Positions 18,422 to 41,300 of a DNA stretch of 64,000 bases are shown here, piece by piece (within the stretch, counting starts at the first letter, position 1; every line of letters begins with the position of its first letter). This DNA is from Epithemia pelagica (taxonomy: Eukaryota; Protista; Bacillariophyta). The position numbers and the translations under genes were made by a program. The notes beneath the pieces were generated by a model that had not been told where the DNA came from, made no database searches, and saw nothing but the letters and a program-made list of their open reading frames with translations. The DNA is taken from contig OX337232.1 in NCBI GenBank assembly GCA_946965045.2, forward strand, positions 1,302,001 through 1,366,000. The letters are read 5' to 3'.

Positions 18422-20620
18422 GGTCGGTGCTGCGAGAGAGTGCCGCTTTGCGAATTGGGGCGTGACTGTTGGCTACTGCGAATGATTATCAAGGAATAAA
18501 CAGCACAAAATGTATTTTGGACTTGCGAATGCCAACAACAAGGCTTCGATCCTTGGGCGTCTTTGGTTCCTATTGTCCCCTTTCCAAAGATGAAACGTTG
18601 AGCCAATCGTGTCCTTATTCTTGATCAGTGCACCTTTCTATATCGCCGATTCGTCCTTGATTAGTCTCTCTCGGGAGGAGTACTTTTTTCGTGGCCTCCT
18701 CCTCTTGTTTTCTCCGTTCGATGATGGTACATCAACAATGTACGTACACAACAAAAGGAGAGCAGCGAGGAAAGCGGTCATGAAAAAAGGATACACACGG
18801 AGCGTTGGGCCACCCCACTGTTCTCTGCTTCTCCGCGGTCTCGTGGGAGAGCCATAGATAAAATTTCATATATCATACGTAACGTTATATATTGATAATC
18901 GCTCATTTAACGTATCATCGAGTCGTTCCAGCGCACCCTGGATGCAAACAGATACCCCCTTACAAATGTTTAGAAGGTAGCACGTGAACGTGACCTAAGT
19001 AAGTTTTATCTTTTTAATTGCCCTTTCTTGGGGGCAGTGACAGATGGCCGACAAAAACATGAAAGTTAGATCTACCAGCCAATTTTTCAATCTAATCGAA
19101 TGCCAACGCAGACGATCCACCTCGGGAATGAGTCGCTACACTGTACTCGTACGGTGTTTAGGGCGAGAGGGAACAATGGATGAGACTTTTTCTCTCACAA
19201 AATCTCACTCAACGGAAATGAAAATTTGGTTTTTGGTTTCCCGGCTGGTGTGGTTCCTAAAAAATGGCCATTCGACAATCAATGTAGTGTATGTTGTATT
19301 CTATTGCCATTCCCGCCATCTGTCAGGTAGTAGTGTTTTGTTCCTAGGTAGTCTCGAGATCTTGGAACGGAAAGACCGGCCCGCTTGTTGTCTGTGCTCG
19401 ACAGCGCCAACGAAAGAAACATGAGGAACAACGACCGATCGTGCTCTGTTCAACTCCTACGATCCCCTTTCAACGACAAAGAGAAGGACGTTGAACCACT
19501 ATCCACATGCTAGTTGTCATTTTCCTTGGTTTTTCCTCCCCGCTTGTCTACGACCAATTCGCGTTGGTCTTGGTTCAACATCGAAAATCGATCCAAACTG
19601 CACAACCATTTGAGTCGTTCATCTTCCGATCTGAGTCGTATGGAATGGATACATTACCGGGAAGAAAGATGGGATCAAAGATGAGATACCTTGATTGATT
19701 GATTGAGCTTTCCCTGCTTTGTCCCGGAAAGCAACGACGTGGCCTTTAGGATGTCCCGGACCATCAACCACAAGGGATATCCTTCGAATATTGTCGAGCA
19801 TACCGTATACATCCCCGTATGTGCCAAGTATTGTTCGCAGCAACAGCAGAAGAGCATTGGTGTTTCATACGTAGCGCTGTCACGTTTCATTGGAAAATTC
19901 ATGTTTTGTCGAGCAGGAAAGTCGGAAGTCGGAATGGGCCGACGTCTTCCCACCGCTGGCCAAACGTTGATGGGCATGTCGAATTACGGCCGTCAGATGG
20001 TCAAGATAGACGGGAGGCAACATTTAGGATAACTTCTACTACTAGGTTTTTTCATGAGAAGATCATGACCATTGGTGGGGGAGCACTGCGCCGTTTGCAA
20101 AATCTTGAACCCCACACACCGCGATTCTTATACCATGGAAAGATTCTGTTAGTATCAACACCTCGCTGTAGCAAGAGATGTCGTTGATCGAATCGTCACT
20201 GGATTGGTCGTCTTGAATGATGTGAGAATAGGGATATGGGTTATGGGAATGAGCCGTTTTGTCCCGCGCCAAAATGGAATGTCGGCAGGTGCGTGGGGGA
20301 GATTCCTGCGCCGAAGCACATGCGCAGGTGACGGGTTCGCCTAAGTATTCAAAATACATAGAAGCGCATATTGGACCTGGACGCGCCCGTCAGACGGCGC
20401 GATCATTCTTTCATCTTTTGAAGTTTGACGCCAAGAACGACGAGAAACAGAGAACATCATTGCCGCCATGGTCGAAGGGTAAACATTCAATTCACAGGTA
20501 TTAGTTGACTTCGACTCTTGTGGGATCCTGACGCATCACAAAGTCGCAACAAGACAATTCATTCGCGTGGAGCGCAACCAGTCGCAACAAATCAGCAACC
20601 ACAGTTTCTGTCGTGGGGGC

Positions 20621-23600
20621 ATGCCGAAACGAAAACAACCGAGTTCTGCTTCCGACACAGAGGATGACAATGATGGACGCGCATCTCCCTTTCTTCCGAA
20701 ATGTGACAATGTACAAGTAAATCACACTGCAGCACCAAGGAATCAAGAGAATGTTCCTCCGCGAATTCCTCCCCCACAAAACGGGAATACATTCTCCTCG
20801 TCTCCGACACCATTGCTCGACCGTCGATACCCTGAAAGATCCGATGGGGTCTTAGCCAAGAGCGCAACTGACGAAAAGAGTAGCGGCAGGTCCACGGGGG
20901 AATTTGGGGGTACATCTAGAATACCCGGAATTCCCAAAGAAAAAACGAGCTCTATTTCGTTCCAAACAGCTGGAACTGGAAGGTCTCTGCAGGTGTCGAA
21001 TGAACAACTCCTTCGAGCTGAAGCGCTAGTTTCACGTCCATCATCTGAAAAATCGCGTGGTCACGACGAACAAGTTTCGGACGACAGTAATGTCGTGCCC
21101 CTCCATTTCGATAGTGCACAACCCTCCACAGACTCGACCAATCCCCCAGCTACAGGACTGTTTCAGAGCGCCGGTTGTGGCAAGGCGATTCATGTCAAGG
21201 AAGAAGACCTCACCAGAGCGAACGACCTTCTTAATCGACCTGCCAAAAATACAGGGAACCATTCCGAGTTCACTGGCTTTAGAGAAATTCACCCGGGAGG
21301 GATTGGAAAAGGGGGCCGAAAAGGACGTGATGCGGCTAATCAAACTGCCGGCAACACAAGGCCTCTTCCAGCAAGAGTTTCATTCGGTGGCCTCGACTGT
21401 CACAGTTCGTCCAGTAGTAGAGAAAGAGACAGCATTCAAAACACATCGCTCAGTCACAGTGCGTCCTTTCACAGTGCAGGAAGTGGCAAGACGATTCAAG
21501 TGGATCCGGAAGCCCTTCTCAGGGCAAATGATATGCTCAATCGATTAGACAATGACAGTTCACGTCAAACAAGAGGTGGCCAACTTCATAAGGACCACGA
21601 TACCAATGTGAAACACATTCCACGCGATCGCAGTCGGACGAAAGATAGCCAATTGTTTCAGAGTGCCGGGAGCGGGAAGACTATACAAGTCGATGACGAA
21701 CAACTTTCAAGGGCAAATGAGCTTCTGAACGTACCTGTTCCTGCCACAACCACAATGCGTCGACCGCCGAGAGTCTCGTTGCCAAGTGTGGGTGACTTCA
21801 GAACCAAGGATGGTAATGAGAAATGCGAAAAGAAAGGTGCGCCTATGGCATTGTTTCAAAGTGCAGGAAGTGGCAAAACGCTTCATGTGGATGAGGAAGA
21901 GATGGAGAGAGCAAGCGAGCTTCTGAACAAACCTGTAAAAACCTCTCGCCATTGTCCTTCAACGATGCCATTGCAGAACGGAGGGACTGGTAAAGAACAT
22001 GGTGAAGGCGAGGGACACGGAACTTCGGGGACAAAATCTGGATTATTTGCTAGTGTGTTTCAAACCGCCGCAAGCGGTAAGACTATTGAGATCGATGAAG
22101 ACCAGCTTGCAAGGGCCGATGAGCTTCTAAACGAACCTGTCACAAATACTGCGAGTCGGCCACCAAGGGTCTCGTTGCTAGGTACGGGCGACTTGAAAAC
22201 CAATAGTAAGAATGGAAAATTTGTGAATGAAGGTGCACCCATGGCATCATTTCAAAGCGCGGGAAGTGGCAAAACGCTTCATGTGGATGAGGAAGCTATG
22301 ACGCGAGCAAACGAGCTACTTAACAAACCTGTGAAAAGGTCACGAGATTGTCCACCAGAGACGCCGTTGCAAGACGGAGGGAATGACAAAGGACTTGACA
22401 AAGGCCCGCGACAAGCAACTACTGGAACGAATGTAGCTGTTTCGTTTCAGAGTGCGGGGAGCGGTAAGACCATACACGTCGATGAAGAACAACTCTCAAG
22501 GGCAAATGAGATTCTGAACGTTCCTGTCACAAACACTTCGAGTCGGCCACCAAGGGTCTCGTTGCCAGGTGTGGGTGACATCAGAACCAAGGCCGGTATT
22601 GAGAAATGCGGAAGGAAAGGTGCACCCATGGCATCATTTCAAAGCGCGGGAAGTGGCAAAACGCTTCATGTGGATGAGGAAGCTATGACGCGAGCAAGCG
22701 AGCTACTTAACAAACCTATGAAAAGGTCACGAGATTGTCCACCAAAGACGCCGTTGCAAGACGGAGGGAATGACAAAGGACTTGACAAAGGCCCGCGACA
22801 AGCAACTACTAGGATAAATCCTGGTGTTTCGTTTCAGAGTGCCGGGAGCGGTAAGACCATAAACGTCGATGAAGAACAACTCTCAAGGGCAAATGAGCTT
22901 TTGAACGTTCCTGTCACAACCACTTCGAGTCGGCCACTAAGGGTCTCGTTGCCAGGTGTGGGTGACTTCAGAACCAAGGCCAGCTTTGAGAAATGCGGAA
23001 GGAAAGGTGCACCCATGGCATTGTTTCAAAATGCGGGAAGTGGCAAAACGCTTCATGTGGATGAGGAAGAGATGGCGAGAGCAAGCGAGCTTCTGAACAA
23101 ACCTGTAAAAACCTCTCGCCATTGTCCTCCAAGGATGCCGTTACAAGATGGAGGGAATGGGCGTGACGAAGGCGCGAAACAAGAAACTGCTGGGACGAAT
23201 GCAGCTGTTTCGTTTCAGAGTGCGGGGAGCGGTAAGACCATAGACGTCGATGAAGAACAACTCTCAAGGGCAAATGAGCTTTTGAACGTTCCTGTCACAA
23301 ACACTTCGAGTCGGCCACCAAGGGTCTCGTTGCCAGGTGTGGGTGACATCAGAACCAAGGCCAGTTTTGAGAAATGCGGAGGGAAAGGTGCACCCATGGC
23401 ATTGTTTCAAAATGCGGGAAGTGGCAAAACGCTTCATGTGGATGAGGAAGAGATGGCGAGAGCAAGCGAGCTTCTGAACAAACCTGTAAAAACCTCTCGC
23501 CATTGTCCTCCAAGGATGCCGTTACAAGATGGAGGGAATGGGCGGGGCAAAGGCCCGCAACAGGGAACTGCTGGGACGAATGCTGGTGTTTCGTTTCAGA

Positions 23601-26600
23601 GTACGGGGAGCGGTAAGACCATAGACGTCGATGAAGAACAACTTTCAAGGGCAAAGGAGCTTCTCAATGAACCTGCTCCTTCCACAAACACTTCGAGTCG
23701 GCCACCAAGGGTTTCATTACCAGGTTTGGGTGACTTCAGAACCAAGGACCAGATTGAAAAACACGAAAACACAGGTGTGCCTGTGGCATCATTTCAAGGT
23801 GGTGGAAGTGGCAAATCACGTAATGTGGATGAGGAAGATACTCGAACAAGTGAGCTTCTCGATGGAACGTCACAGAATCCGGCATATTGTCCACCTAGAG
23901 TATCGATGCATGAGTCAAGTTTTGAGTATAAAGCCCAAGAAAGCAGTAAGAAGAATCAGTCGGATGGAGAGTGCAAGGACATTTCATTTTCCAGTTTTCA
24001 ACTCCCCAGCTCCGAATCAATTGATCTCGGCCAATTGGACATTGATGCCTCCCCTGCACATGAGAGCAGCGTAAAGGAGGGCAAGAAGGATCTCGTCACT
24101 CAAGAAGTGATCCTATCATTCGTTTACTCGCAAGTCCATGATTATGATTGTTCTTTTACAACGTCGCGCGGAGAAAATGAGGGGACAAATGATTCGAAAA
24201 GCGAGCGTCCATCAGATCGAAACGTCACCCCATCGTCTTTACGTGGCTCCTCACTTATCGATATCACTAGTCCTCCTTCTTCACATGGACCAGGCACGGA
24301 GAGTATTCCAGCTTCATTGGCATCTCCAGGAAGACAGGCGAGATCGAAAGCAGCTAATTCTGGAGTTATGTCGGATATTCAATTTCAATCTCACGATGAG
24401 ATGTCGAATCCTTACAAAACACCGTATGCTACAAAACATATCTCGCTGACGGATTCGCGGGGGGCTGCATTTTCCTCCTTGAGAGCAAACACTGGACACT
24501 TACTGGAAGCTGCAATAAGAAGAGGCGCGATGTCAGGTTTAGACGAATGCAGAATTTATGGTGTAAACCCATTAGTCTGCGGAACGAACAGTGCAAACTC
24601 CGAATCAATTCGATTCGACAGAGAAACGAGGGCTCCTTGCGACCGTAACTCGGCTCGTAGTGAAGGCCTTATAGGTTGCGCGGCAGATCTTGAGCTTGCC
24701 CTAAAATCTGCAGGATGCAACACTGACAAAATCTCATCCGTTTGGATTCGCAACCATTCTCGTTGGATAAATTGGAAACTGTGCTCAATTGAACGACGCT
24801 TTCCTCGCTTTTTGGCTAATCGTTTCTTCACGTATGATCGCGTTGTCGCCCACTTGTGCTCTCGTTATCGGAAAGAAATTGAGGATGGGAAACGTTCGGC
24901 ACTCCGCCAGATTCTCAACCACGATGCCTCTGCGAAACGAATGATGACTCTGTGTATTGCGCAAGTACTCCGTAAAGAAGCAGAATCAGCGATTTCTTTT
25001 TCGCTCGAATTGACTGATGGATGGTACTCTGTTTATGCTGAGCCCGACCGATTTCTCACGAAAAAGATTGAGGATGGGACACTTTGTGAGGGTACCAAAG
25101 TTGTATTGTCTCAAGCTGAGCTGTGTGGTGGGGATGAAGGTGTTGATCCCTTAGATGAAGGCTTCAAACCGTCCGAAGCTCCGTATCTACGGATATTTGC
25201 AAACGGAACAAGAATTGCCAAGTGGGGAATGAAGCTTGGCTTTGTCCCTCAACAAACCAAGAGCATGGATTCCCCGTCCTTGACAGTCAAAAGTATGCGT
25301 GGGATTGTGCCTGGTGGCGGGATTGTTCCACGGATTGATGTCACCGTATTGAAAAGGCACCCTATCCAATATCTCACCCAAGGCGACGATGAACCAAGAC
25401 GGACAATATCTGAGAATGAGGAAATGGAGCGTCGTACAAAATTTGAAAACAAACAAGCACGTTTTGTTGAAAAAATGGTTTCGGAGATAGAGGCTCAATG
25501 CTCAAAGGTGCGTTCGCATCTGTCAATTATTGGAAGTTAGACTTGATCTAACTATTCTCTGTTCTCGTCAGGATCTTGAAGAAGAAGCACCTGCAATCTG
25601 GCGTCAGCGTGCTGCGGGAAATGATGACTTCGACGCATCTGCCTTATCATATAGTGAACAAAAACAACTTGAGGTTTGGAACCGGAAACGCCTTGAACTT
25701 CTGCGGGTCAACGTGGAGCAAGAAATGAAAGGCAGACTGGAAGAACATGACATTGTTTTTGTGCAGTCCAAGCCCTTTCATAGATTTGTTGTTTGTACTT
25801 CAGACTATTTCGAGGAGAACGATGGTAAAACCTCATCAACCGCTGACCTTACGCTATGGGAGCCAACAGAAGAACAGCTTGAATTACTTAAAGAGGGAAC
25901 TTGTGTGCGGATGAGCAATGTGTCAGTGAAAGATGAGACTTTCGAATGCCGTTTGCAGTTAGTAGCAAACTCGAGGACTAGATTCCGCTCGGCTGAAGCA
26001 GATATCGCTGATCACATCAACAAAATAACATCGAAAAGACTTGGGCTGGTACAGGTCCACGCTCTATCGAAAAGAAAATCGATGCTTGTTTTCAATCTGG
26101 CTGCGATAGTAATGGAGGTTGTGGTGACAAGTATGGGGATGCAATACATTGCAACTGATAGATCCGGGCTGGTTGTGCGCATCGAATGCTTCGAAGCTGG
26201 GACTGCATCATCGATAGACCTTCCTGAACGTTTTCCAGTGCTTGTATTCCAAGGACTTCGCTTGGTTGATTACGACTCGTATTCAAACTGTGCTGTTGCT
26301 GAGATGGGCAGTGAGTCAACAGTCAATATGAATACTACAGACCCTAGTGTTTGTTCACTGCAACGTTGGGTCGGCACAGAGGACGGTCAGACTCGTTTGT
26401 GTAAACTCGCTCCTTATATCAAGGCCAGGCTTTCACCAGTCCCTGTCGCCAAGAATTCGAGAAGTCTCGTTCAAGCCCTAGGATATTTGACCGACTTTAT
26501 GGTTTTGCATGGTGGCGAACTCGTTGTCAAAGTTGACTGTTTTGCGACGGGTATTCAGAGCTGGTCATTACCACTTTCTCTTTTATCCCGAATCAAGTAC

Positions 26601-26831
26601 CTGCATAAACAGGAGAGAAGTATGGTTTTTCTCAGTCCAGAAGAAGAACAGCGACTTTCTCAGCTATCGTCTCTGGATTGTATTGTCCGTATCAAAAGCC
26701 TCCTACGCTTCGTATTACAGCCACAAAATGATCATCCCGAAGGGCACTGCCGATACGTTGTTGTTGACGTGTCTGTGGCCAATGCAAAGGCGGTTGCCCA
26801 ACTGTACCACCAGTTTTGTGCGCTAGAATAA
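20621..26831 (+). CDS. BRCA2: BRCA2 homolog, 2 exons (20621-25507, 25572-26831), about 2048 aa
   Basis: Has multiple BRC repeats (F-x-[ST]-A-G-[ST]-G-K...), the helical domain WIRNHSRWINWKL, and OB1 LELTDGWYSV...LRIFANGTRIAKWGMKLG. The 64-bp intron has a CTAAC branch point and is followed by OB2/OB3-like sequence (ADLTLWEP). Confidence 0.95.
20960..23860 (+). repeat. BRC repeat array: 14 clear + 1 degenerate BRC motifs; later ones in tandem two-BRC units of 396/387/387/381 bp
   Basis: Unit-marking ATGs (PMAxFQ) lie at 21845, 22241, 22628, 23015 and 23396. Confidence 0.9.
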
Positions 26832-26987
26832 CAAGTAGAACTCATACGACCTCCGAGCTCCATGTCAGCCATCCTTGCGTCTTGTTTCCAGATGAAGTAT
26901 CCCGGCCACGCATCCATTTCTACAGATACATGCCATGGAGAAGACAAGACAATTTCTATTTTAAGGGACGTAACCGTTTCATACCTG

Positions 26988-29900
26988 TCACCTCCCCCCG
27001 TCTTCAATGGACTCGGTCAACAGCTCCAAGAGCTTATCGAACCCAATCGCCCGCCACATGGCTTGCCAATTATTGTCCACGTCGGGTGCCCCCTCTGGAC
27101 GACGAGCCACAGTGTGCATTTGTTCGGGACTGGCACCGTAAGGATACATGCCCGCCTTTTCCGCACGAGCATGCATGCCCGCCATTTGTTCGTCCGTCAT
27201 TGTAGCACTACGAGACATGAAATTGATCCCCTCAAATACGCGAACACCACCACGTTCCAAGCACTGGAATTGTATGCTTTCGTTATATTCACCAGTGGCT
27301 GGATCTTTTTGCACATCCACTATGTAGTTGGGAAATTCGACTCCAAACCCACTTTCTCTCAAGATGCCTGGAGGATCGTTTGGATCCACTCTTCCAAACA
27401 AGAAGTAGTGAGCACCATTCGCTACCGGACTCTTGTCCCACGAGAGTTTGGCAGCATCCGGTGCTGGTCCTTTTACGGCAAAGTCGTCTACCCACCCAGT
27501 TCCACCGTCCGTCAACTTGATTTTGAGTGTTGTGTCGTAGACTTCTTTGAACTGCGTCCAGTCATGGAACTTTTGTTCATACCATAACCCTTGGTACTTG
27601 TTCAAGTCAAAGTTATCCATACTTGGTTGTCGCACTTCATCGTAAGCGGGACATCCTTTTACAACTTGACCTTTGTAGCTGTCGTCGACAGCCAGGTTGA
27701 AGTCGCCCATGCCTGCAGTGCCGTCGAGGCCGGCACCAACATAGGAAAAGAAAGCAGCTACAGCAGCAATGTTCAGTGCAGTACGCAGCTGTTGCGATAC
27801 AGAAAAAGCCCCAATAAATAGAGCATTCCCCAACAAGAACAACAGTGGAACAAGTTGATCTCCCAACACTTTGGGCCCCGGTGTTCCATGCATCACATCA
27901 CTGATCCACAGAATGGGTTGTAATATCGGATGACCCACTGCAAAAAATACCCAAAAGTTGAGAGCCGGCCAGAATTCCTCTGGAGACGCGTTTTGCTTCA
28001 TTTCCATGATGGAGTTGTAGAAATCAGCATAGGCACCCGCGTGAGAAGCCACGGCGACTGCTCCTGCGATCGCTGCAATGATGGGTAAGGCACTATTTTT
28101 AACCATAGACACAACGTTGGTGCTGCTCTCTTCAACCGCACCATCTCCGCCAATCTTGTCCGTGGCGACCCGCTCAAGTAGGTCAACAAACGCATCGGCG
28201 AATTCCTTGTTCGTTTCCGCGCTCACCACTGGTGACATGGGATGGAATGTGAATTTGAAGGCTCCATTCACAGTCATACAGGAGAGAGGATACAAACATC
28301 CAGAACGCACATGTGGAGTGGCAAAGTACACGTCCTCCACACGATGCCGTCCATGTTGAATTTGCAACTTCCGGGAGGCATCGTCCTCGTCGCCCTCTCT
28401 TGCAAAGGCGGATTGGCGTTCGTACACACCGACATTGGTGACACCTGCACTGTAGGCCCGCCCTTGTGTATCCTTGGACTGTGACGTCAAATGCACGAGA
28501 TTGTTCATATCGGAAATGGTCATGGCAAAATCAAACACACGGACCGCTTCTTCTGGACCATTGGTGTCGACAAACGCCTTTGTTTGACTCTTGGACTCCT
28601 TGGCCAGGTCCCAAAATTTTTGGTCCGACCGGGTCTTGCCTCCTCGTAGTGCCTTTCCGGATCCGTCAGGGACCGGTCCCAACATGAGATCATGACTGCC
28701 AGCCATGCAAGCTACCGTATCGGCCGGATCCAACTGTTTCCCAAATCGTCGCATATCCAAGGATTGCAAAACCTTGTAATTCCGTGACTTTTCGGCGGCG
28801 GCGTCATTTCCGACAAAGTCAGCGGCCGTCAATGTCATGGCGGCAGTTAATGCATTGGACATGGAGACGCCATTGGCTCGGCACTTGTTCAAGACCGCCG
28901 TCGTCGTGTCTTGGTCCAACGTTCGGAATTGTGCCACCGTTTCACGCTTGGCACTGCCTTGATCTTGACCTCCGGCCGTCTTGCCTGAGATAATTTGCAA
29001 GGCACCCAAAAGAGGATTGGCCGTTTCTTCCTGATCCGCCGTGGTTGGATTGGGCAAAATCACGGGATCTTTGGACGATTCCCCCGCCTTGCCGAGTACG
29101 TAGGAAACAGTGGAAAGGGAAAAGGACTTGGTTCCCTCTTCACTAAAGCGATGACCCAATCCCAAGACCGAGTCTTCGACGCTCATGGGCATGTCAGCAT
29201 GTAATTTGGAAGGAGGATCGATGTTACCCGAAGATTCCAAACTGGCAACATTTTGCATTATTTGATCAACGAACCGATTGACGCTGGATTGATCGGAAAT
29301 GGCATGGTTCAAGGAAAATACCAAAGCGCATGGCTTTTCCTTGTTGGAAGATCGGTACCATTCCACCTTCCACAAGGGCCCAGATTCTGTGTTACACCAC
29401 GATCCATCGTCATCCAAGTCTTGGACAAAGGTGTTTTGCCATTGTTGCGTCAACTCCGCTTCGTCGTCCAACGAATTGTACACGGTCAATACTTGATCGA
29501 CCGAAAAGGGAGATTGAGGATCCATGACAAAGGTGCAGGGATTGGGATCTCCCTTGCGTACCATTTGCATGAGATCAATGCGTTTCTCGGGTTCTCCGTC
29601 ACCTTCCACACGTGCATTCAAGAGTGGATGTGCTGCCATGGCTTCTTGTAGCGCTTGTCGAAAAATCGATTCCTCCGGTGTGGCGCTCAATACCACGGCA
29701 CAAACATGAGTCATTTGAGGAAACACAGTGTTGGTCTTTTCGATACCTGGTCCGTACTGACGAGGCAGCATGAGCAATTCCTGTGATCCCAAAACACGAC
29801 GACGTTGGTCTGTCGAGGAGGAGGAGGAGGAGGAAGAAGAAGAAGAAGAGGATTCGGTGGGTTTGGGCTCTTCGACGGCTGCCGATTGTGACAAAGAACG

Positions 29901-30050
29901 ACCACGTTTGGACACATCCACTGGAAGTGACGGTACAGCTTCGATCCAGGGACTTGTTCTGGAAGAGAGAGGGGCCACAAAGGCACGTGCGATAGGAAAG
30001 GCCGTCGAGCCTATCCACCAAATGGCCGACAGTCGTGACAACAAGTTCAT
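26988..30050 (-). CDS. Plastid-targeted fusion: CoA-dependent acyltransferase (condensation/alcohol-acetyltransferase-like) + TM helices + lipocalin, about 1020 aa, intronless
   Basis: The leader MNLLSRLSAIWWIGSTAFPIARA|FVAP is a signal peptide + Phe. It has the HxxxD motif LVFSLNHAISDQ, SLDMRR and SNVG-like TNVGVY motifs, 3-4 hydrophobic segments, and the lipocalin SCR1 FDLNKYQGLWYE. Confidence 0.8.
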   Translation of the reverse strand: MNLLSRLSAIWWIGSTAFPIARAFVAPLSSRTSPWIEAVPSLPVDVSKRGRSLSQSAAVEEPKPTESSSSSSSSSSSSSTDQRRRVLGSQELLMLPRQYGPGIEKTNTVFPQMTHVCAVVLSATPEESIFRQALQEAMAAHPLLNARVEGDGEPEKRIDLMQMVRKGDPNPCTFVMDPQSPFSVDQVLTVYNSLDDEAELTQQWQNTFVQDLDDDGSWCNTESGPLWKVEWYRSSNKEKPCALVFSLNHAISDQSSVNRFVDQIMQNVASLESSGNIDPPSKLHADMPMSVEDSVLGLGHRFSEEGTKSFSLSTVSYVLGKAGESSKDPVILPNPTTADQEETANPLLGALQIISGKTAGGQDQGSAKRETVAQFRTLDQDTTTAVLNKCRANGVSMSNALTAAMTLTAADFVGNDAAAEKSRNYKVLQSLDMRRFGKQLDPADTVACMAGSHDLMLGPVPDGSGKALRGGKTRSDQKFWDLAKESKSQTKAFVDTNGPEEAVRVFDFAMTISDMNNLVHLTSQSKDTQGRAYSAGVTNVGVYERQSAFAREGDEDDASRKLQIQHGRHRVEDVYFATPHVRSGCLYPLSCMTVNGAFKFTFHPMSPVVSAETNKEFADAFVDLLERVATDKIGGDGAVEESSTNVVSMVKNSALPIIAAIAGAVAVASHAGAYADFYNSIMEMKQNASPEEFWPALNFWVFFAVGHPILQPILWISDVMHGTPGPKVLGDQLVPLLFLLGNALFIGAFSVSQQLRTALNIAAVAAFFSYVGAGLDGTAGMGDFNLAVDDSYKGQVVKGCPAYDEVRQPSMDNFDLNKYQGLWYEQKFHDWTQFKEVYDTTLKIKLTDGGTGWVDDFAVKGPAPDAAKLSWDKSPVANGAHYFLFGRVDPNDPPGILRESGFGVEFPNYIVDVQKDPATGEYNESIQFQCLERGGVRVFEGINFMSRSATMTDEQMAGMHARAEKAGMYPYGASPEQMHTVARRPEGAPDVDNNWQAMWRAIGFDKLLELLTESIEDGGR

Positions 30051-30602
30051 GATTTCAACAGAACGCAATACCTCTAATCCAGAGCTTCTGTGACAAAAGC
30101 TTGACAAAATAGGAAGATTTCGATGGTCCTGACACCCTTGGATGTTCCTCTTTCCGTGTCCCTCGTCTTGTTGCCTTCGTTGGAACAAGAAACGACACGG
30201 TGAACCGGAAGAATGAGGTATGCGGCGATGGTTGATTGTTGGATGGAAGTTCAACCGTGACTGACATTTGACGTTTCAGTCACTACTTTCTACGTCATAT
30301 GGTCCGCGGCAAAGACACGCGCGTCGGGCGAACCATGTTTTCCGCGCATGCCGACCGTCACACCAGTATCTTCGCAACCAACAACGAGACTGCGTCTCTT
30401 CGTTTTGAAAACTTCGAACCAGGAACCAGGACACGAGAAGCCTGGTTCATTCTCATCCTGGTCATTTTAGTGTTGCCCACCATCATCCTTGCTCTCCTGA
30501 ACTGTCAGTGGTGAAAGGAACGATTGATTGCCATCCTTAGTTCGGCAGGACTGTGAATTTGTGTTGGCAGTGGATGTGCGGAATTCCTGAGAGCAATGCA
30601 CC

Positions 30603-31586
30603 ATGTCCTTACCACCACCGCCTCTTTCTCCACTACCACGACGCGTCCAAAGTGCACCACCTTCTCCCATTGCTGTGGTAGTGGCATCCAGTCCGTCGTC
30701 GCCGCGGGGTGGTTTCTCGACGGCATACAACAGTGAAAGCGAACGAGTGATGACAGTAACAGAACAGCAACAACAAGAACGACAACAGCAAAGTGAAGAA
30801 GCAAGTCCAAAAGAGGATGGATCGCAACCAGGAAGTGAACTACGACTTTCGCTTGCGGAACTAGATGCTCCAACGACTCCCTGTCGACGGAGAGTCAGTC
30901 AAAGCCCAAGGACACAATCGTCGTCTCGGAAAGGCCGTCGGTCACGAAAAAGAAACGAAGAACCCTGTTCCTCTCCTCTCTCTTTTGCTGCGTCCCAAAC
31001 ATCGACACCCTTGTCGTTGACACAATGCCGCAAACGACGCAAATACACTGCTACACCCACGAGCAATGCCAAACCAAAACCAACACTGCCGTCTGCCTCG
31101 TATTGTTGCATTTGTATGCAAGACGCTGCCGACCATCACCAACTGGCAAAGGTCAATGGCTGTTTGCACCACTTTTGCTTTGATTGCATTGCTGAATGGT
31201 CCAAGGTGGAAAACTCTTGTCCCCTCTGCAAGAACCGCTTTACTCAAATTATTCGCATTCCTCCTCGTCACCGCAACAGCAATCGTACAAGAGGACAGGC
31301 ATCCGATCCGGAACAGCATGACCCAATGACGAACAAAGACAAGAATGAGTCGCAAGAAACGTCACCTTGCCCGGATCATTCCGACGAAATGAAAGATCCA
31401 GAGCCTGACATTCTCTTTGTGGAGGAGCGTCATCAAGAACAAGAACATCATCATGCCGTCATGGTCTCACTCTTGGCGACACGTGAACTGGAGGCACCGC
31501 ACGATCCGTCCTTTTGGACGAGAATTCTTGCGCAGTTTGCACCCTTGTTTGGACTCGCCTTGTCCTCGGAGGGCAGCGAGGGATAA
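30603..31586 (+). CDS. C3HC4 RING-finger protein (PHRF1/TOPORS-type RING), 327 aa
   Basis: CCICMQ...GCLHHFCFDCIAEWSKVENSCPLCKNRF. Confidence 0.85.
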   Translation: MSLPPPPLSPLPRRVQSAPPSPIAVVVASSPSSPRGGFSTAYNSESERVMTVTEQQQQERQQQSEEASPKEDGSQPGSELRLSLAELDAPTTPCRRRVSQSPRTQSSSRKGRRSRKRNEEPCSSPLSFAASQTSTPLSLTQCRKRRKYTATPTSNAKPKPTLPSASYCCICMQDAADHHQLAKVNGCLHHFCFDCIAEWSKVENSCPLCKNRFTQIIRIPPRHRNSNRTRGQASDPEQHDPMTNKDKNESQETSPCPDHSDEMKDPEPDILFVEERHQEQEHHHAVMVSLLATRELEAPHDPSFWTRILAQFAPLFGLALSSEGSEG

Positions 31587-35103: not shown

Positions 35104-37953
35104 CTAAGTTTGATCGGCTTCTTTGCTCGCGATCTTCTTACCAGGTTTATAATTCGCGGCCACAAGCACCTTACGAGGATTGTCACTTAGGACGCAAACA
35201 CGCTTGTCCCCGACCCAAAGCTTAACCCCAACGAGCCCACTTCGGCGAACACCAGGGATGTCTTTGTCATGGAAGTAGTAGTCGGAAAGCCTGCTTTCTC
35301 CAGAAGGAAGGTTGTAGGTGTTCTTTGGCATGGGATCGTGAACGGTCCCATCTTTTCCTTGGTACACGTAGAAATGTGCACGTGGATTCCCCATCTCCCC
35401 AGTCTTAAAGCCACCAGCATGGACAGTATCTCCTCGAACGAGGAGAAACGTGCCATATGGGATATGTACCACTTTACCCAGCTCGTTCATATAATCCTTG
35501 TGCTTCTCACCGCGGAAACTCCACAATTCAACGGACATACCCTCCTCCGCCAGGGGCATGAAAACAATAAAAGGCATGCGTTCCCGGAGTGGCAGATCTG
35601 CATTCGCTCTCCGAGTCTTTTTGATTGGTTGCTTCCCGGAGGGCGTTTTGGGACCTTCGGACATGTTCCCTGTTACGCTCTGGAACAAGAAGTCGATGTG
35701 AGGTTCTTGAACTTTTGCCTCTGTGGTCTTCATGAACGAAAGGTGAATGTTGATTTGGTCCGCAAATGAATCATCTTTTGCGTAGTTCATCCCATAGAGA
35801 GCTGAGGCAAGCAGCTGCTTGAAATTGGCCGTGACCTTTGCAGCATGTTCGGGGTTAACGTGGCCGAAGTACCGAATGTTGGACACCATTCCCTCATGTT
35901 CCATCATTGCCATCAACAAATTTGGTGTGTAGTCTTGAACAGATTTGAAAAATTTGCCCTTTCCTTTCTGGTCCAAGCCTGTGCTGTGCCACGCATTCTC
36001 CAACATTTCGAGGAGATCTGGCGGAGTTGTCAAAAAATATCCTCGATACATTTTGTTTTCAATATCGTACAGCCATTTGAAATACTTCGAGCGCAATTCT
36101 CTATGTAACAACTTCATTTTCTCGAAACGCTCATTCTCCTTCGCTTTCGCATCGATCGCTTCCATCTCCTCAAAAATACTATCCGTGTCATCTTCTGCCA
36201 TTACCACTGGTACGAACATTCCAGTACTAGGGCTGGGATTGGCTTGAGTGGCGGGTTGAGCTTGTGCTGCAGGTAGGACGGGACTGCTGGGAAGGAGCAC
36301 GGGTTGAGCTTGTGCTGCAGGTGGGATGGGATTGCTCGGAAGGAGGTGGGGTGAGCCTTCGACCGGCTGGGTCGTGCGTTGTTGTTGCTGCTGATGATGG
36401 AGCGATGAAGGTAGAGTCCCCCCGTAACCTCCATAGTTGGGTTGATTGTAGGACGGAGGATGTCCATGGTACTGCGGCGGAGGATGACTCGTCGGAGGAT
36501 GAGGATAATGCGGCGGAGGATAAGGATAATGCGGCGGAGGATGATGATTGTACTGCGGCGGAGGGTAATTGTACTGCGGCGGAGGATAATTGTACTGCGG
36601 CGGAGGATGGTGATAATATTGCGGAGGATAATGCGGCGGCAGCTGAGGGGGCGAATTGTAGTGCTCAGAAACGTATTGCGGAGGAGGCGGAGAAGGAGGA
36701 CGAGCAACAGTAGCAACTGGACGGAAAACAGTAGAAGGAGAAGTTAAGACAGGCTTCTTTGTTTTTTTCCCGTCGTCTTCATTTTCATCACTGGGTCGAC
36801 CGCGTTTCTTTCCCTCGTCTTCGTCGTCGTCACCTTTCGTCGACGGTCGGATAACCTGTTCGGAGGACGTCGGCGATTCGTCCGTAAGGTTATAAAACAA
36901 AGACAGCTCGTCGCCCGGCTCAATATTTTTGATTGCCTTAACTAGAAGATTCGGCATGATTCTCACGTTGTAACCGTCGTCCGATTCATCCGGTGGATTG
37001 TCTGTACCGTACAGATGGTGTTGGTGGTCGTTGATTAAGTGCAGCCCCATGCCGAAGTGATCGTCGTTGTCTGCTTGAAGCCTTCGATTGTCACGTCCGA
37101 ACTGAATCGCGTACTCGTTGGGTACAACTGTCCGAGACGTGACGTCGTTTCCCGTGTACGCACCAATCACTTCACCATCTTTGATTGTCCGAACTGCAAA
37201 AACGCCAAACCCGGCGCCTGGGAGTTTTGACTCCTTCACCTCAAACAGAAGCATTTTTCCAAGGTAGATCTTGACTACCGGATTGTTCGCAAATGTGTAA
37301 CCGACATGCTTGCCGATCGGGAAGGTATGTTTTCTGTTCTTCTTGACAGGGAGACCCATTCCACTCGAAAGTGGCACAATCTTCCCCTTTAGCAAGCCAG
37401 AACCGGGCTTCCGAATTGGAGCTTCTTGGACCGAAAAAGTGGCCGAAATCTTCCGTGAGACATACTCTCCCATAGCACAGGCAAGTACAGCACTGTCTTT
37501 GATCTTGGAGAGCGTCTTGAGGCCTTCGGTGAAAGTCCTGATTGGATCCCGTCCAGAACGAGAAGGGAGTTTCTCCACTTCCTCGATGCCTTTCTTGTAG
37601 TCCTCTGTGCGCGTATCGATGAGGAGCTGCCGCATTTGAGTTTCCGAATACTGTTTGCTGTGGTCCTTCTCTGGATGGCCACGCCGAACATCTGCAAGCT
37701 TTTTATCCTTCACTTCGGCAAAGTCTTGATCCGAAAGAAACCGATGGTGCTTTGTTGTTGTCGCTTCGTCTGTTGCTGCTGCTTCGGGTGCTGCGGCTGC
37801 TGCTGCTTCGGGCGCCGCTGCTGCTTTGGCTGACTGCTCTTCCGCTGCATCTATTGCAAGTATAAGAGCGTCAAGATTTCCTTTGTCACTCATGCTGTCT
37901 CGTTTTTGAGCGCCTGCTTTTGAATACTGTTTCTTAGGGCTTGGTTTCCCCAT
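35104..37953 (-). CDS. Cargo fusion protein: SET domain + AT-hook-like KRGRP + P/Y-rich repeats + C-terminal Fe(II)/2OG dioxygenase-like (DSBH) domain, about 949 aa
   Basis: SET motifs: GAGFGVFAVRTIKDGEVIGAYTG, LHLINDH, VKAIKNIEPGDELSLFYN. DSBH motifs: QEPHIDF (HxD), FIVFMPL, LLVRGDTVHAGG (distal His), PRAHFYV (Arg). Confidence 0.8.
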   Translation of the reverse strand: MGKPSPKKQYSKAGAQKRDSMSDKGNLDALILAIDAAEEQSAKAAAAPEAAAAAAPEAAATDEATTTKHHRFLSDQDFAEVKDKKLADVRRGHPEKDHSKQYSETQMRQLLIDTRTEDYKKGIEEVEKLPSRSGRDPIRTFTEGLKTLSKIKDSAVLACAMGEYVSRKISATFSVQEAPIRKPGSGLLKGKIVPLSSGMGLPVKKNRKHTFPIGKHVGYTFANNPVVKIYLGKMLLFEVKESKLPGAGFGVFAVRTIKDGEVIGAYTGNDVTSRTVVPNEYAIQFGRDNRRLQADNDDHFGMGLHLINDHQHHLYGTDNPPDESDDGYNVRIMPNLLVKAIKNIEPGDELSLFYNLTDESPTSSEQVIRPSTKGDDDEDEGKKRGRPSDENEDDGKKTKKPVLTSPSTVFRPVATVARPPSPPPPQYVSEHYNSPPQLPPHYPPQYYHHPPPQYNYPPPQYNYPPPQYNHHPPPHYPYPPPHYPHPPTSHPPPQYHGHPPSYNQPNYGGYGGTLPSSLHHQQQQQRTTQPVEGSPHLLPSNPIPPAAQAQPVLLPSSPVLPAAQAQPATQANPSPSTGMFVPVVMAEDDTDSIFEEMEAIDAKAKENERFEKMKLLHRELRSKYFKWLYDIENKMYRGYFLTTPPDLLEMLENAWHSTGLDQKGKGKFFKSVQDYTPNLLMAMMEHEGMVSNIRYFGHVNPEHAAKVTANFKQLLASALYGMNYAKDDSFADQINIHLSFMKTTEAKVQEPHIDFLFQSVTGNMSEGPKTPSGKQPIKKTRRANADLPLRERMPFIVFMPLAEEGMSVELWSFRGEKHKDYMNELGKVVHIPYGTFLLVRGDTVHAGGFKTGEMGNPRAHFYVYQGKDGTVHDPMPKNTYNLPSGESRLSDYYFHDKDIPGVRRSGLVGVKLWVGDKRVCVLSDNPRKVLVAANYKPGKKIASKEADQT

Positions 37954-38365
37954 GGTCGAAACACAAAAACTCGAAACACGAAACACAAGAAACACGAAAC
38001 GCAGCATTCTCCTCAGCCCTCAGCCCACATTCCAAAAAAAAAATCTTGAGCTCACATACTAAAAAACGGTGAAGTTTTGGTATGTGGGCTGAGTTACTTA
38101 AGGATTTGCGTGCCAGTTTTGCGATGCGTGCGCGTTTTCGGAGAGGGAGGCGTGTTTCGCGCGAGGTCTGCTCCGAAAATCGTCCATTTTCTCGCTCTCT
38201 CACATTTTCGAGGTACTTACAAACTGATAATCCAACACGCAACACGAGCACGCAACACGGAAGTGATCATTGATACCAATAACTGACAAGAAATACATTC
38301 AATAAAATGGATTGCTGTTATAAATAGTTAAGTTACATGCATTTTGATGATAAATGGAGATTAGA

Positions 38366-41300
38366 TCAGGTTTCTACTGCACCAGATCCTTGCGTTTCTC
38401 TCCAGAGACGTGAGATGAAGCCATGATCTTGGTCGAAGGCGGATCGGTGACACTTGATTGCTTTTGACATCTTTTCAATTTCGGCATACGAGAGGCCCGC
38501 AGCTGCATAGTCGCTGTTGTTGGAATTTTGATCGTATAACAAGTACGCGAGCATATAGCGACGTGCCTTTGCTGACATTTTCCGCATGATTTCGGGTGTT
38601 GTTTTCTTCAGGCTCGCTGTCAAACATCGTAAAAAGGCAGCTTTGTCTTTCTTCTCATTCAGTGAGAAAGCACGAAAGACTTTTTTTGAGTAACCCCAGC
38701 CATACTCGATCCCCTCACCGGCCATTTCACAGTGATACTTGGTCGATACGAGAATCTCGATCCTGCAACGATGTCGTTCAGACAAGTCTTCCGCCAGCTT
38801 CTCCATTGCAGATTTTTCGTTCTTGAAATCGGAGCATTCGCTCATCAGATGAACCATAGAGTACTTTTTGTAGTCCGCCTGATAGGCTTCTTTCACAGTC
38901 TTCTTATCCGCTTCCAACCATGCATCTCTGGTTGTCTTGACGTACTTGATCATGTTGTTAGGGTCTATCCACCCCCGCTCCCATAACACTTGAAAGAGCC
39001 CTTTTGCATTATTCATCCAGCCTTCCTCGATCACATCATCTTCAATCACCGTTGCAATGTTGGAGCGTTTACAAAGGTCCTGTAGTTCACCAGCATTTTT
39101 CGATTGAAATGAACGTTGCATTCCAGGTCCCATGACCCGGACAAGTTTTGCCATGAGCTCCTTCTTTGTGAGGTTGCGCTTTTTCTTTCTACCAGTTCGG
39201 TGTGTATTCTTCGATGCGACACGCTGCGCGTCATTGAGACGATGGCCTTTTTTAGCAACTGGACCACGATCGTTCTCCTGATAGACGAGGTGTTGTACGT
39301 CACCAACTCGTAGTTTGTCGTCATGGTTGTACGGGCCAAGGCAAGCTTGATCAATAATTTGTGTGTCCCGCATGCTGGGAACAGCTCCTCCCCAGTCGTT
39401 ATTCATGTTCAGAGCATTTAACCCATCGGATTGTTGTTTTCCATGACCACTGCTTTGGTCGAACAAAAAGACAAAGTCATGGGCGGGGAACATGACCACG
39501 AGGCAATCGACAATATCCTCCAACTGCAAGGCCATGTATTCATAATTCCAATATCCCTCTTTATCTGCTCCGTATTCAAAAAAGCGAGTGAACGGTTGGG
39601 CATTGGTAATTGGAGTCTTGGCAGTGTGACCATTGAGGTTCACTGCAGCCTCGGTAGAGACGTATTTGTTGTGTGTCGCATGTAGACGGAGTTCATTAAT
39701 CCGAAATAGACTCGCAGCAAGCAACGGGTTTCCGTTCATAAGGAAGCCCCATGATCGGCTTACAAAAGCGCTGATCATCATCCCATGTCCATCATCCTTT
39801 GGCAGCATTTTAGTTGCGCCATCTTTAGTGTACCATGCCTTAGACGAGAAGGAAAACTGCTTGTAGATCGATTCGTCCTGGCCGATGAGGATGACAGGTT
39901 TGCGGTCGGAGGGAAACCTGTGTGACAAGTTTCCATTGTGAATTGTGTTTTCTGGTTTGATGTACCGTTCAAATTCGCTTGGGAAGGCATCAACATGGTA
40001 CTCCCGCATCTGCTTGCCTGTTGTTACATCAGTGTACTCAAATACAAAGCTGTTTGGCAAGAGCTTCTCCTTGCCCGCATTCCCTTCGTTTTCAAGTTTG
40101 ATTGCATCCTCGGTAGGGAGCTGCACCCACCGATACGACAGCTCTTCCCACTTAAAGTACTTCTTGACAAAAGCAGCTCTGTGGGCAACATTCTCAGCAT
40201 TTTCGTGTCGATCAGTGAAGTATGTTTTCGTGTGTTCCTTGAACACGAGCCCTGCAGCAGCAATACATCGCCACGCTGTGCTTTGCGAAATGGTGGAAAG
40301 CTTCATCGATGCCAAGAAGGCCTCGTACGATACTGGCGTTGCATTCGTATCCATGCACTCTTGTACGATCATGGTATGCATATCCGGAAGCAATGTTGTC
40401 CTCAGGTACATTAGAGCAGACTCTGTTGTAAGAGTGCTCAGGTTTTCCTTTGCCCAGCATTCAAACTTTACCTTTGCTTCAGGTATGTGAACGAATAAGA
40501 CGGGCGATGGCTCTTTCCCAATATGAACGTGGTAGTTGGGATGAGGGAAACTGTCGTTTTCCCGAAAGTACCTGTGAAAACGAGCAATGGTCTTGGGATG
40601 TTTTTTTACTTTTTCACCATAAATCTGTTCCATTTTGCTTATGGCTTCGCTTATGCAGTTCAGCCATGTACGACCGTGTGGCATATCAAGCAACGCTATC
40701 TTATAAGAAAGTTGTAAATACGTTGCCTTGAGCAGTACCCTCTGTTGCTGTTCCTGGTTGGGGGGGAAGATGTCTCCCTTGTTAACCACATTCGGAAGTG
40801 CCTCCACGTTGGAAATGGCCCTTTCAAGGGTTTCTATCCATCGCTCAAGATTTCGTTTTGACGATCCTGGAGAATCGCATTTGCCGGCAAAGAGCCTACG
40901 GTTCCTTGGCTCATCAAAACAGGCGCTTTCCATTTGTTGCGATAGACCTTGGATCATCTCACTCTCGAAAACTGAAAAACCAATCGGCAAACTCTGTGGA
41001 TGGTCATGGCCGATTTCGTCTGTGGCCAATTCAGGATGTTGGATTGCTCCAACAAGCACCTGATTTGTGTTGTCGTGAGGTGGTGACGTTTGCATTTCGG
41101 TAGGGCTGTCTCCAATTTGTGGCGGTTGACCATGTTGCTGCGTTGCAGTGCTCTTCATTGCTGGTGGTGTTGTAGTGTTTCTTGCTTGCTTGGATACAGT
41201 TGCCGTGCCTTCATGTACCCCTGGTGAGTCTTCGTTCCTTCGCTTCGTTGGCTTCTCTCGTCCCGACCGCCGAATCACATTCTCGGCTGCAGCCTCCAGC

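Follow-up and report, generated by a model that had tools for sequence, protein, structure and literature searches.

Fucoxanthin is among the most abundant carotenoids on Earth. The enzyme that acetylates it was described in April 2026, when Phatr3_J36932 of Phaeodactylum was identified as XACT, the xanthophyll acetyltransferase that serves fucoxanthin synthesis and depends on acetyl-CoA (Cao et al., PNAS 2026, PMC13080032). [quoted passage not shown] Knockout cells are green, lack fucoxanthin and accumulate fucoxanthinol, and the cDNA rescues them; the recombinant enzyme acetylates fucoxanthinol, phaneroxanthinol and allenoxanthin, uses acetyl-CoA almost exclusively and loses its activity upon deletion of L153 (PMC13080032). 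XACT activity was shown only for enzymes from Phaeodactylum, Nannochloropsis, Ectocarpus, Symbiodinium and haptophytes, and all reported members of the family come from algae that produce acetylated xanthophylls (PMC13080032). The preferred substrates vary by lineage (PMC13080032).

The gene studied here lies in a window of 64,000 nucleotides of Epithemia pelagica DNA; the contig is diatom nuclear DNA and not human. The minus-strand ORF extends over 26988..30254. Its first ATG, at 30050, opens a protein of 1020 amino acids plus stop, and upstream of 30050 this ORF holds no in-frame ATG. The gene is identical to ctg1296l of the unannotated ENA assembly ERZ21939226. This contig encodes the protein P0121, and P0001 represents the other haplotig. 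With tblastn no second copy of the gene was found in the window. An ORF of 1088 amino acids at 38366-41632 was considered as a paralogue on account of its equal ORF length and was rejected: it contains neither an AATase nor any other Pfam domain, and tblastn was negative. The features of the gene are as follows.

26988..30050, minus strand: complete intron-free coding sequence of the probable XACT orthologue, 1020 aa plus stop, collinear with 120 homologues
29982..30050, minus strand: putative signal peptide, aa 1-23, ending in ARA with F at +1 (ASAFAP-type diatom plastid motif)
29799..29981, minus strand: transit-peptide-like region, aa 24-84, Ser/Thr-rich, pLDDT <50, about 12% identity to homologues
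29814-29852, minus strand: run of 13 Ser within the transit-peptide-like region
28155..29798, minus strand: predicted catalytic acetyltransferase domain, aa 85-632, AATase family, two-lobed HxxxD fold
29619..29630, minus strand: HPLL motif, aa 141-144, with L144 as the counterpart of PtXACT L153
29292..29309, minus strand: NHAISD, aa 248-253, HxxxD catalytic motif, invariant or nearly so
28101..28154, minus strand: disordered linker, aa 633-650, pLDDT about 41-44, low conservation
27723..28100, minus strand: hydrophobic helical module, aa 651-776, presumed membrane anchor by hydropathy and predicted model
27669..27722, minus strand: conserved connector, aa 777-794, G-rich, with DFNLAVDD
27156..27668, minus strand: lipocalin barrel and flanking helix, aa 795-965, by AlphaFold2 (pLDDT about 95), Foldseek and the first motif
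27576-27590, minus strand: GLWYE, aa 821-825, within the lipocalin barrel
26991..27155, minus strand: conserved C-terminal tail, aa 966-1020, two helices (994-1016), ending in IEDGGR, 76% identity to homologues

The initial annotation, made from the letters alone, had described a single intron-free frame in which a bipartite plastid leader, an acyltransferase with an intact HxxxD, membrane segments and a lipocalin are fused. The 1020 uninterrupted codons bear out the frame. More than 100 diatom proteins share the arrangement from one end to the other, so that the fusion is not a gene-model artefact, as had been argued.

PtXACT shows the same order of parts: a plastid leader, an AATase domain that contains HxxxD and, within HPLL, the essential leucine, and a C-terminal lipocalin. 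Orthology to XACT was defined by an E value below 1e-20 to Phatr3_J36932 and membership in a monophyletic algal clade. The 120 homologue matches listed all scored above 800 bits and were diatom-like. The homologue P0012 is 63% identical to the window protein, collinear with it and ends in the same residues; like its near-identical relatives it derives from JGI metagenome samples. P0012 is 1020 amino acids long and carries L153 and H154 in its HPLL motif, as in the numbering of PtXACT, so that residue numbering, length and architecture suggest that it corresponds to PtXACT. The window protein differs from PtXACT in having Asn in place of H154. The tree of the family is similar to that of the diatom species and places the window protein among the raphid pennates, beside Entomoneis, Amphora and P0012; the nearest named relative is that of Entomoneis (71-73%). 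We therefore regard the gene as the XACT orthologue of a raphid pennate diatom, with a probability of roughly 90%. The literature check proposed with the initial annotation led to the published XACT, and the candidate fucoxanthin-pathway acetyltransferase it had suggested is matched by that family as a full-length collinear orthologue.

At the N-terminus, residues 1-23 end in ARA and are followed by F-V-A-P. The leader is only about 12% identical to those of the homologues. A small residue followed by F within positions 11-46 was nevertheless found in 69 of the 80 homologue leaders, as against 31 +/- 4 in shuffles. Judged by motif, the hydrophobic N-terminus followed by ARA|F has the form of the bipartite plastid presequence expected of an XACT, in agreement with the leader first described, and points to plastid targeting of the window protein. 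The nuclear-encoded pre-protein would enter the complex plastid by means of a signal peptide cut before Phe and then a Ser-rich transit peptide.

The catalytic domain has the AATase-type assignment (PF07247 / PTHR28037) and the HxxxD motif expected of an XACT. Its match to Pfam AATase PF07247 reached 23.5-25.8 bits against a gathering cut-off of 22 and is confined to the N-lobe (profile positions 28-190 of 500); the NCBIfam search of the protein gave a single chance match. Within the intact NHAISD motif, N248, H249, S252 and D253 do not vary among 42 homologues and hardly vary among 120. H141, P142 and L143 show no variation across the 42-sequence alignment, where L144, which occupies the place of the essential PtXACT leucine, is at least 90% conserved; in the 120 sequences all four residues of HPLL reach at least 90%. 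AlphaFold2 predicted the domain with pLDDT mostly above 90. A PDB relative was not found by sequence search; the fold search alone matched. Foldseek retrieved AzeD (8s6l, TM 0.83), the TRI3 15-O-acetyltransferase (3fot), NRPS condensation domains and PapA5 (1q9j), which have the same two-lobed fold with TM values up to 0.83 to the target. However, these CAT/condensation-fold structures are only 10-16% identical in sequence to the catalytic domain of the window protein.

The yeast-type alcohol acetyltransferases such as Atf1/Atf2 (PF07247, PTHR28037) share the HxxxD motif and also the specificity for acetyl-CoA (PMC13080032). In contrast to these, the window protein would act on a C40 xanthophyll, carries a plastid leader and continues into a membrane and lipocalin module. 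Xanthophyll hydroxyls are likewise esterified by the plant enzymes PYP1 and XAT, but these belong to other protein families and use long acyl chains (PMC13080032). By orthology to PtXACT, the window protein would be expected to catalyze the same reaction. In late intermediates of fucoxanthin synthesis, the 3-hydroxyl of the allenic end ring would then be the group on which H249 of NHAISD acts as general base, and this hydroxyl would attack acetyl-CoA, so that fucoxanthinol, phaneroxanthinol and allenoxanthin would be converted to fucoxanthin, phaneroxanthin and haptoxanthin, respectively.

A flexible linker ties the catalytic domain to a hydrophobic block, which most likely holds the enzyme at a plastid membrane near its lipophilic substrates. 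Kyte-Doolittle windows of at least 1.5 were found at aa 654-672, 733-751 and 757-775, with a conserved helix at 690-722. The AlphaFold2 model places five helices within aa 645-776 (approximately 654-668, 671-687, 690-722, 736-751 and 753-776); H707 and H721 are conserved in this module. Three to four transmembrane segments had been proposed at the outset. The hydrophobic helical block stood, with three hydropathy windows and five predicted helices, and from its hydropathy we infer that it spans the membrane. Pfam gave no significant match to the block (B12D and Tlr3_TMD matched at chance level; a sub-threshold match had E 0.013), and Foldseek found no PDB fold match for it. The words "transmembrane" and "membrane" do not occur in the text of PMC13080032, nor does that text mention a hydrophobic block between the two domains.

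The C-terminal lipocalin, too, agrees with the initial description, by its predicted fold and its first motif. The first motif alone matches Lipocalin_2, ApoD and Blc by sequence (E 0.07-0.8): Pfam Lipocalin_2 gave E 0.07 over 12 residues, with 13.5 bits against a cut-off of 24, and the PDB profile search of the region gave E 0.3-0.8. Since the Lipocalin_2 match lies below the cut-off, membership in the lipocalins is based on the fold and not on a sequence profile. DSSP on the AlphaFold2 model assigned eight main barrel strands and a helix at 953-965. Foldseek matched the barrel to 323 PDB chains at E<=1e-3; the 50 matches listed were all lipocalins (ApoD, TM 0.75). The eight-strand antiparallel barrel, the flanking helix and the GxW first motif, whose GLWYE aligns with ApoD and Blc, are those of a lipocalin, as in the Diatomista XACTs. 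ApoD, Blc, crustacyanin, sandercyanin and plant TIL share with the window protein the eight-strand barrel, the C-terminal helix and FDxxKYxGxWYE (TM to the targets 0.62-0.76). Identity to them is however only 13-22%, and the barrel of the window protein comes after the hydrophobic block and before a conserved tail of two helices. VDE and VDL are lipocalin folds able to bind and even transform xanthophylls; Pfam did not report the VDE lipocalin domain for the window protein or its C-terminal part.

In the prediction, the helices and the barrel form a single rigid unit (pTM 0.90, pLDDT 93). The conservation of this module exceeds that of the enzyme domain: identity to the homologues is about 82% in the barrel and 63% in the helices, versus 53% in the catalytic domain. 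The barrel forms a small family of its own, with 377 matches in 1.84 billion representatives. Proteins that consist of the module alone behind a plastid leader were found in a haptophyte and in Euglena, and diatoms have one as a second paralogue; 68 alignment columns have the same residue in the fused and the stand-alone clades. The named carriers of the helix-bearing form are diatoms, Triparma, Prymnesium and Euglena. A related barrel without helices is fused to the XACT of the dinoflagellate Breviolum; the diatom and Breviolum barrels lie on opposite sides of a deep split. Two Chrysista, Phaeothamnion and Chrysoparadoxa, have barrel-only relatives. When 185,579 genomes of bacteria and archaea were scanned, no relative of the module was returned; since the scan relied on conserved peptide patterns, this is a weak negative. 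To our knowledge, diatoms, Triparma, Prymnesium and Euglena all make diadinoxanthin, and we know of no acetylated xanthophylls and no XACT in Euglena. A strict tracking of diadinoxanthin producers by the module was considered; it is weakened by the barrels of Phaeothamnion and Chrysoparadoxa and by the helix-less dinoflagellate fusion.

What, then, could be the role of the C-terminal half? A possible interpretation, which we favor only tentatively, is that the helices and the lipocalin are a functional partner of the enzyme, i. e. a membrane-embedded carrier and not a mere anchor. With the same reserve, such a carrier might pass allenic xanthophylls from the bilayer or from VDL/ZEP to the catalytic domain, or might remove the product. 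The conservation of the module above that of the enzyme domain, the columns shared by fused and stand-alone clades and the rigid unit formed by helices and barrel are consistent with this. The nearest folds, besides ApoD and Blc, include crustacyanin and sandercyanin, which bind carotenoids or pigments. The distribution has the pattern of a Rosetta stone: in diatoms the fusion to XACT includes the helices, in Breviolum it lacks them, and in a haptophyte the module is encoded separately. The occurrence of the module in Euglena and the additional stand-alone paralogue kept by diatoms, however, speak against a carrier. In vitro, Km and Vmax shift when the lipocalin is removed, as a carrier might lead one to expect; yet for rescue of the mutant, as for activity in vitro, domain 1 of PtXACT is sufficient (PMC13080032). 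The published mutant retains an in-frame allele which still expresses the module, so that the module has never yet been removed by experiment (PMC13080032).

It is somewhat less likely that the module is only a membrane tether and regulatory sensor, which binds a small non-carotenoid molecule and thereby tunes the activity. The authors themselves propose a regulatory role of the lipocalin for an unknown ligand (PMC13080032), and the lipocalin neighbors bind steroids, fatty acids, heme and biliverdin. A sensor does not readily explain the stand-alone plastid-targeted copies, be it in Euglena or in lineages whose XACT lacks the module, and it leaves the stronger conservation relative to the enzyme domain unexplained. 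Whether as the carrier that we tentatively prefer or as a regulator, the barrel, although dispensable for catalysis, probably binds a hydrophobic ligand, which would be a xanthophyll for delivery or removal in the one case and a regulatory molecule in the other.

We consider it quite improbable that the module represents an autonomous plastid family with a carotenoid-handling or catalytic role of its own, which two separate fusions linked to xanthophyll acetylation. Taken furthest, this idea would have the module perform a step at the allenic end group, for example the water elimination that leads from neoxanthin to diadinoxanthin, which is ascribed to "a yet unknown enzyme" in Bai et al. 2022.

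For the catalytic half, the wax-ester, phytyl-ester or lipid-remodelling role named as the alternative at the outset found no support, and an acyltransferase for these or another hydrophobic alcohol such as a sterol, instead of a xanthophyll acetyltransferase, is highly unlikely: the HxxxD fold is common to many O-acyltransferases, PapA_C and Condensation matched weakly in the Pfam search and Foldseek also matched the glycolipid acyltransferase 8jos, but the window protein is over its full length orthologous to a characterised family whose Phaeodactylum member is nearly restricted to acetyl-CoA (PMC13080032), it has the HxxxD of BAHD enzymes without a DFGWG-like motif or a match to Pfam Transferase, and it lacks the HHxxxDG of WS/DGAT as well as any match to Pfam WES_acyltransf or the other wax-ester/phytyl-ester synthase families.

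The function guessed from the sequence is thus correct but was already published in April 2026. The acetylation of fucoxanthin was the last large gap of the pathway, and it was closed by that study (PMC13080032). The locus described here adds an unannotated orthologue from another diatom and shows that the family is recognisable from raw sequence. Its remaining value is in the C-terminal half, with its high conservation, its undescribed hydrophobic block and its stand-alone relatives. If the module does have a second function in the traffic or chemistry of xanthophylls, this would bear on the remaining steps of the pathway and on the engineering of fucoxanthin production.

By its sequence, the 1020-aa protein encoded on the minus strand of the window belongs to the XACT family, the xanthophyll acetyltransferases described for the fucoxanthin pathway of Phaeodactylum tricornutum (PtXACT, Phatr3_J36932; Cao et al., PNAS 2026, PMC13080032). 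This supports the interpretation of the initial annotation, a plastid xanthophyll acetyltransferase of the fucoxanthin pathway, and answers its literature question, as an assigned fucoxanthin acetyltransferase does exist. The XACT mutant is green and without fucoxanthin, fucoxanthinol builds up, and the cDNA restores the defect. Substrates of the recombinant enzyme are fucoxanthinol, phaneroxanthinol, allenoxanthin and 9'-cis-neoxanthin, which it acetylates with essentially only acetyl-CoA as acyl donor; diadinoxanthin, violaxanthin and all-trans-neoxanthin are not converted. The reaction is an acetyl-CoA-dependent O-acetylation of the 3-hydroxyl of the allenic ring of late fucoxanthin intermediates, and Domain 1 alone suffices for it in vivo and in vitro. 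The family is restricted to lineages that have acetylated xanthophylls; XACT carries the lipocalin in Diatomista and dinoflagellates but not in haptophytes and Chrysista (PMC13080032).

All 120 listed homologue matches score above 800 bits, and the named ones are diatoms (Entomoneis with 71-73%, Nitzschia, Amphora, Pseudo-nitzschia, Stephanocyclus and others). The homologue P0012 has 1020 aa and carries L153 and H154 in its HPLL motif, the residues and numbers published for PtXACT, so that the two are presumably the same protein. Past the leader, P0012 and the window protein align with 63% identity all the way to the C-terminus. In the family tree, whose branching reflects diatom relationships, the window protein stands among the raphid pennates. 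The window protein has the sequence-level features of XACT that were checked (AATase domain with HxxxD, the HPLL leucine, plastid leader and C-terminal lipocalin), and it would work like PtXACT.

The open reading frame extends over 26988..30254 (-). Its first ATG lies at 30050, exactly the start coordinate proposed initially, and opens an unbroken frame of 1020 codons, far beyond chance in DNA with a G+C content of 48%. The initial annotation had regarded this frame as a single intron-free fusion and not as a gene-model artefact. This view holds, because over 100 proteins align with it collinearly from end to end; the motifs named in it were likewise all found (ARA, then FVAP, aa 21-27; NHAISD, aa 248-253; GLWYE, aa 821-825). 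The sequence is identical to that on contig ctg1296l of the ENA assembly ERZ21939226. A syntenic second copy on ctg1340l (locus L001) of the same assembly is 99.76% identical over 5 kb (window 26000-31000), and its XACT differs at four residues (178, 368, 569 and 923). This copy probably represents the second haplotype of a diploid diatom. The ENA gene model (908 aa; P0121 for the window copy, P0001 for the other haplotig; loci L001 and L004) begins at Met113 and omits 29715-30050 (-), i.e. the plastid leader and 28 conserved residues. This latter segment, aa 85-112 (RVLGSQELLMLPRQY...), is invariant among the homologues; the model places the start too far downstream.

The genes around XACT are eukaryotic (BRCA2-like, RING, SET, DUF6824), and the contig is diatom nuclear, not human. 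No functional tie to XACT is evident for the following four:
16523-18421, minus strand, DUF6824 protein
30603-31586, plus strand, RING-finger protein, adjoining XACT in divergent orientation
35104-38007, minus strand, SET-domain protein
38366-41632, minus strand, 1088-aa ORF with no Pfam domain
Two overlapping ORFs make up the BRCA2-like gene (20567-26831, +; domains BRCA2 repeat, helical, OB1 and OB2). They are linked in frame (...SEIEAQCSK / DLEEEAPAI...) by a GT...AG intron of 64 nt (25508-25571), and thus this is one gene without a frameshift.

The leader (aa 1-84) has an identity of only ~12% to its homologues, and most of it, aa 15-79, has a pLDDT below 50 in AlphaFold2. Of the 80 homologue leaders, 69 (31 +/- 4 in shuffles) conserve a hydrophobic N-terminus with a small residue and Phe behind it, a pattern that we take to be the ASAFAP-type signature of plastid import in diatoms. 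Through this bipartite leader the protein would be imported into the plastid. In the transit-peptide region there is a run of 13 Ser codons (29814-29852, -), which is of low complexity and likely variable in length; its opposite strand reads as a poly-Glu ORF.

The catalytic domain (aa 85-632) exceeds the gathering threshold of Pfam AATase and has weaker matches to PapA_C and Condensation. Its pLDDT is mostly above 90 in the full-length AlphaFold2 model (81.9 overall), for which Foldseek returned AzeD (TM 0.83), the trichothecene 15-O-acetyltransferase TRI3, NRPS condensation domains and PapA5. A motif check found neither the BAHD motif DFGWG nor the WS/DGAT motif HHxxxDG in the window protein. 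As in other HxxxD enzymes, the general base would be H249 of NHAISD. The counterpart of PtXACT H154 in the window protein is Asn (aa 145; 29616-29618, -; HPLLN versus HPLLH), as it is in six other listed homologues; the commonest residue there is Arg. Hence H154N of the published in-frame allele is a natural variant, which agrees with the finding that deletion of L153 alone abolishes in vitro activity (PMC13080032).

Behind the catalytic domain, AlphaFold2 predicts a disordered linker (aa 633-650) and, within aa 645-776, five helices, of which three have a Kyte-Doolittle mean above 1.5, then an eight-strand barrel with a flanking helix and a two-helix tail. Modelled separately with 115 homologues, aa 641-1020 reached a pLDDT of 93.3 and a pTM of 0.90. 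Foldseek found 323 PDB matches to this model at E<=1e-3. The 50 listed are all lipocalins, among them sandercyanin, ApoD (TM 0.75), crustacyanin, Blc, plant TIL and others. By its predicted fold the barrel is a lipocalin; recognition from sequence is limited to the first motif, and the barrel fails the curated lipocalin sequence profiles. Only ~190 columns align in these matches, and therefore the helical block is without a solved counterpart. The helical block probably provides membrane attachment, and the barrel probably binds a ligand.

Over 41 homologues, mean identity to the window protein is 53% in the catalytic domain, 63% in the helical block, 82% in the barrel and 76% in the tail. A search with aa 641-1020 alone yielded complete stand-alone proteins of ~400-480 aa with their own leaders, from the haptophyte Prymnesium parvum, from Euglena gracilis and, as a second diverged diatom copy, from Attheya. 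Proteins consisting of helical block and lipocalin only, with their own signal/transit peptides, are P0170, P0172, P0176 and P0178, further P0216 (Prymnesium parvum KAL1522140.1), P0225 (Euglena gracilis), and P0182 and P0242 (Attheya). The module tree has three clades: the fused form, the stand-alone haptophyte/Euglena type and the stand-alone diatom paralogue. At 68 columns the residue is identical across all three, among them two His of the helices (H707, H721) and, in the barrel region, C800, H829, D830, C930 and R937. The module family is small: an exhaustive profile search over 1.84 billion representatives gave no more than 377 proteins at E<=1e-3. In Pfam and the literature search we found no family or paper describing the stand-alone helical and lipocalin proteins.

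Distant relatives without the helices are stand-alone barrels in the Chrysista Phaeothamnion and Chrysoparadoxa and the XACT-fused barrel of Breviolum. The barrel-only relatives (P0364, Phaeothamnion confervicola CAM9608471.1; P0384, Chrysoparadoxa australica CAM9773982.1; P0369; P0373; ~35% identity) have leaders with an Arg-Arg motif, then a hydrophobic stretch and ALA. These look like twin-arginine thylakoid-lumen signals and raise a question about the orientation of the XACT barrel relative to the membrane. Dinoflagellate XACT (P0412, Breviolum minutum; P0385) has HSIDD instead of HAISD and, in place of the helical block, a ~35-residue linker to the barrel. In the unrooted barrel tree a long, well-supported branch parts helix-bearing from barrel-only forms, and the dinoflagellate fused barrel groups with the barrel-only Chrysista proteins, away from the diatom barrel. 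The simplest reading is that XACT fused twice to this lipocalin lineage. One old fusion with later loss of the helices would be a less simple alternative, for which an unrooted tree leaves room. The pattern of a double fusion argues for a functional link of XACT and lipocalin.

Cao et al. judged the lipocalin dispensable and call for work on its ligand; a membrane segment is mentioned nowhere in their paper (PMC13080032). In their mutant S32, one allele has a frameshift and the other an in-frame deletion of 3 bp (PMC13080032); the second should therefore still yield a protein of full length whose module is intact. We infer that the published mutant does not cover a null of the module. It is conceivable, though improbable, that the module has its own xanthophyll-handling role or even catalyses a step such as neoxanthin to diadinoxanthin, for which the enzyme was unknown in Bai et al. 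2022 and our literature search found no paper assigning it.

The function of XACT is already published, and the locus is an unannotated new member of an experimentally characterised family. Its remaining interest lies in the highly conserved module of helices and lipocalin.
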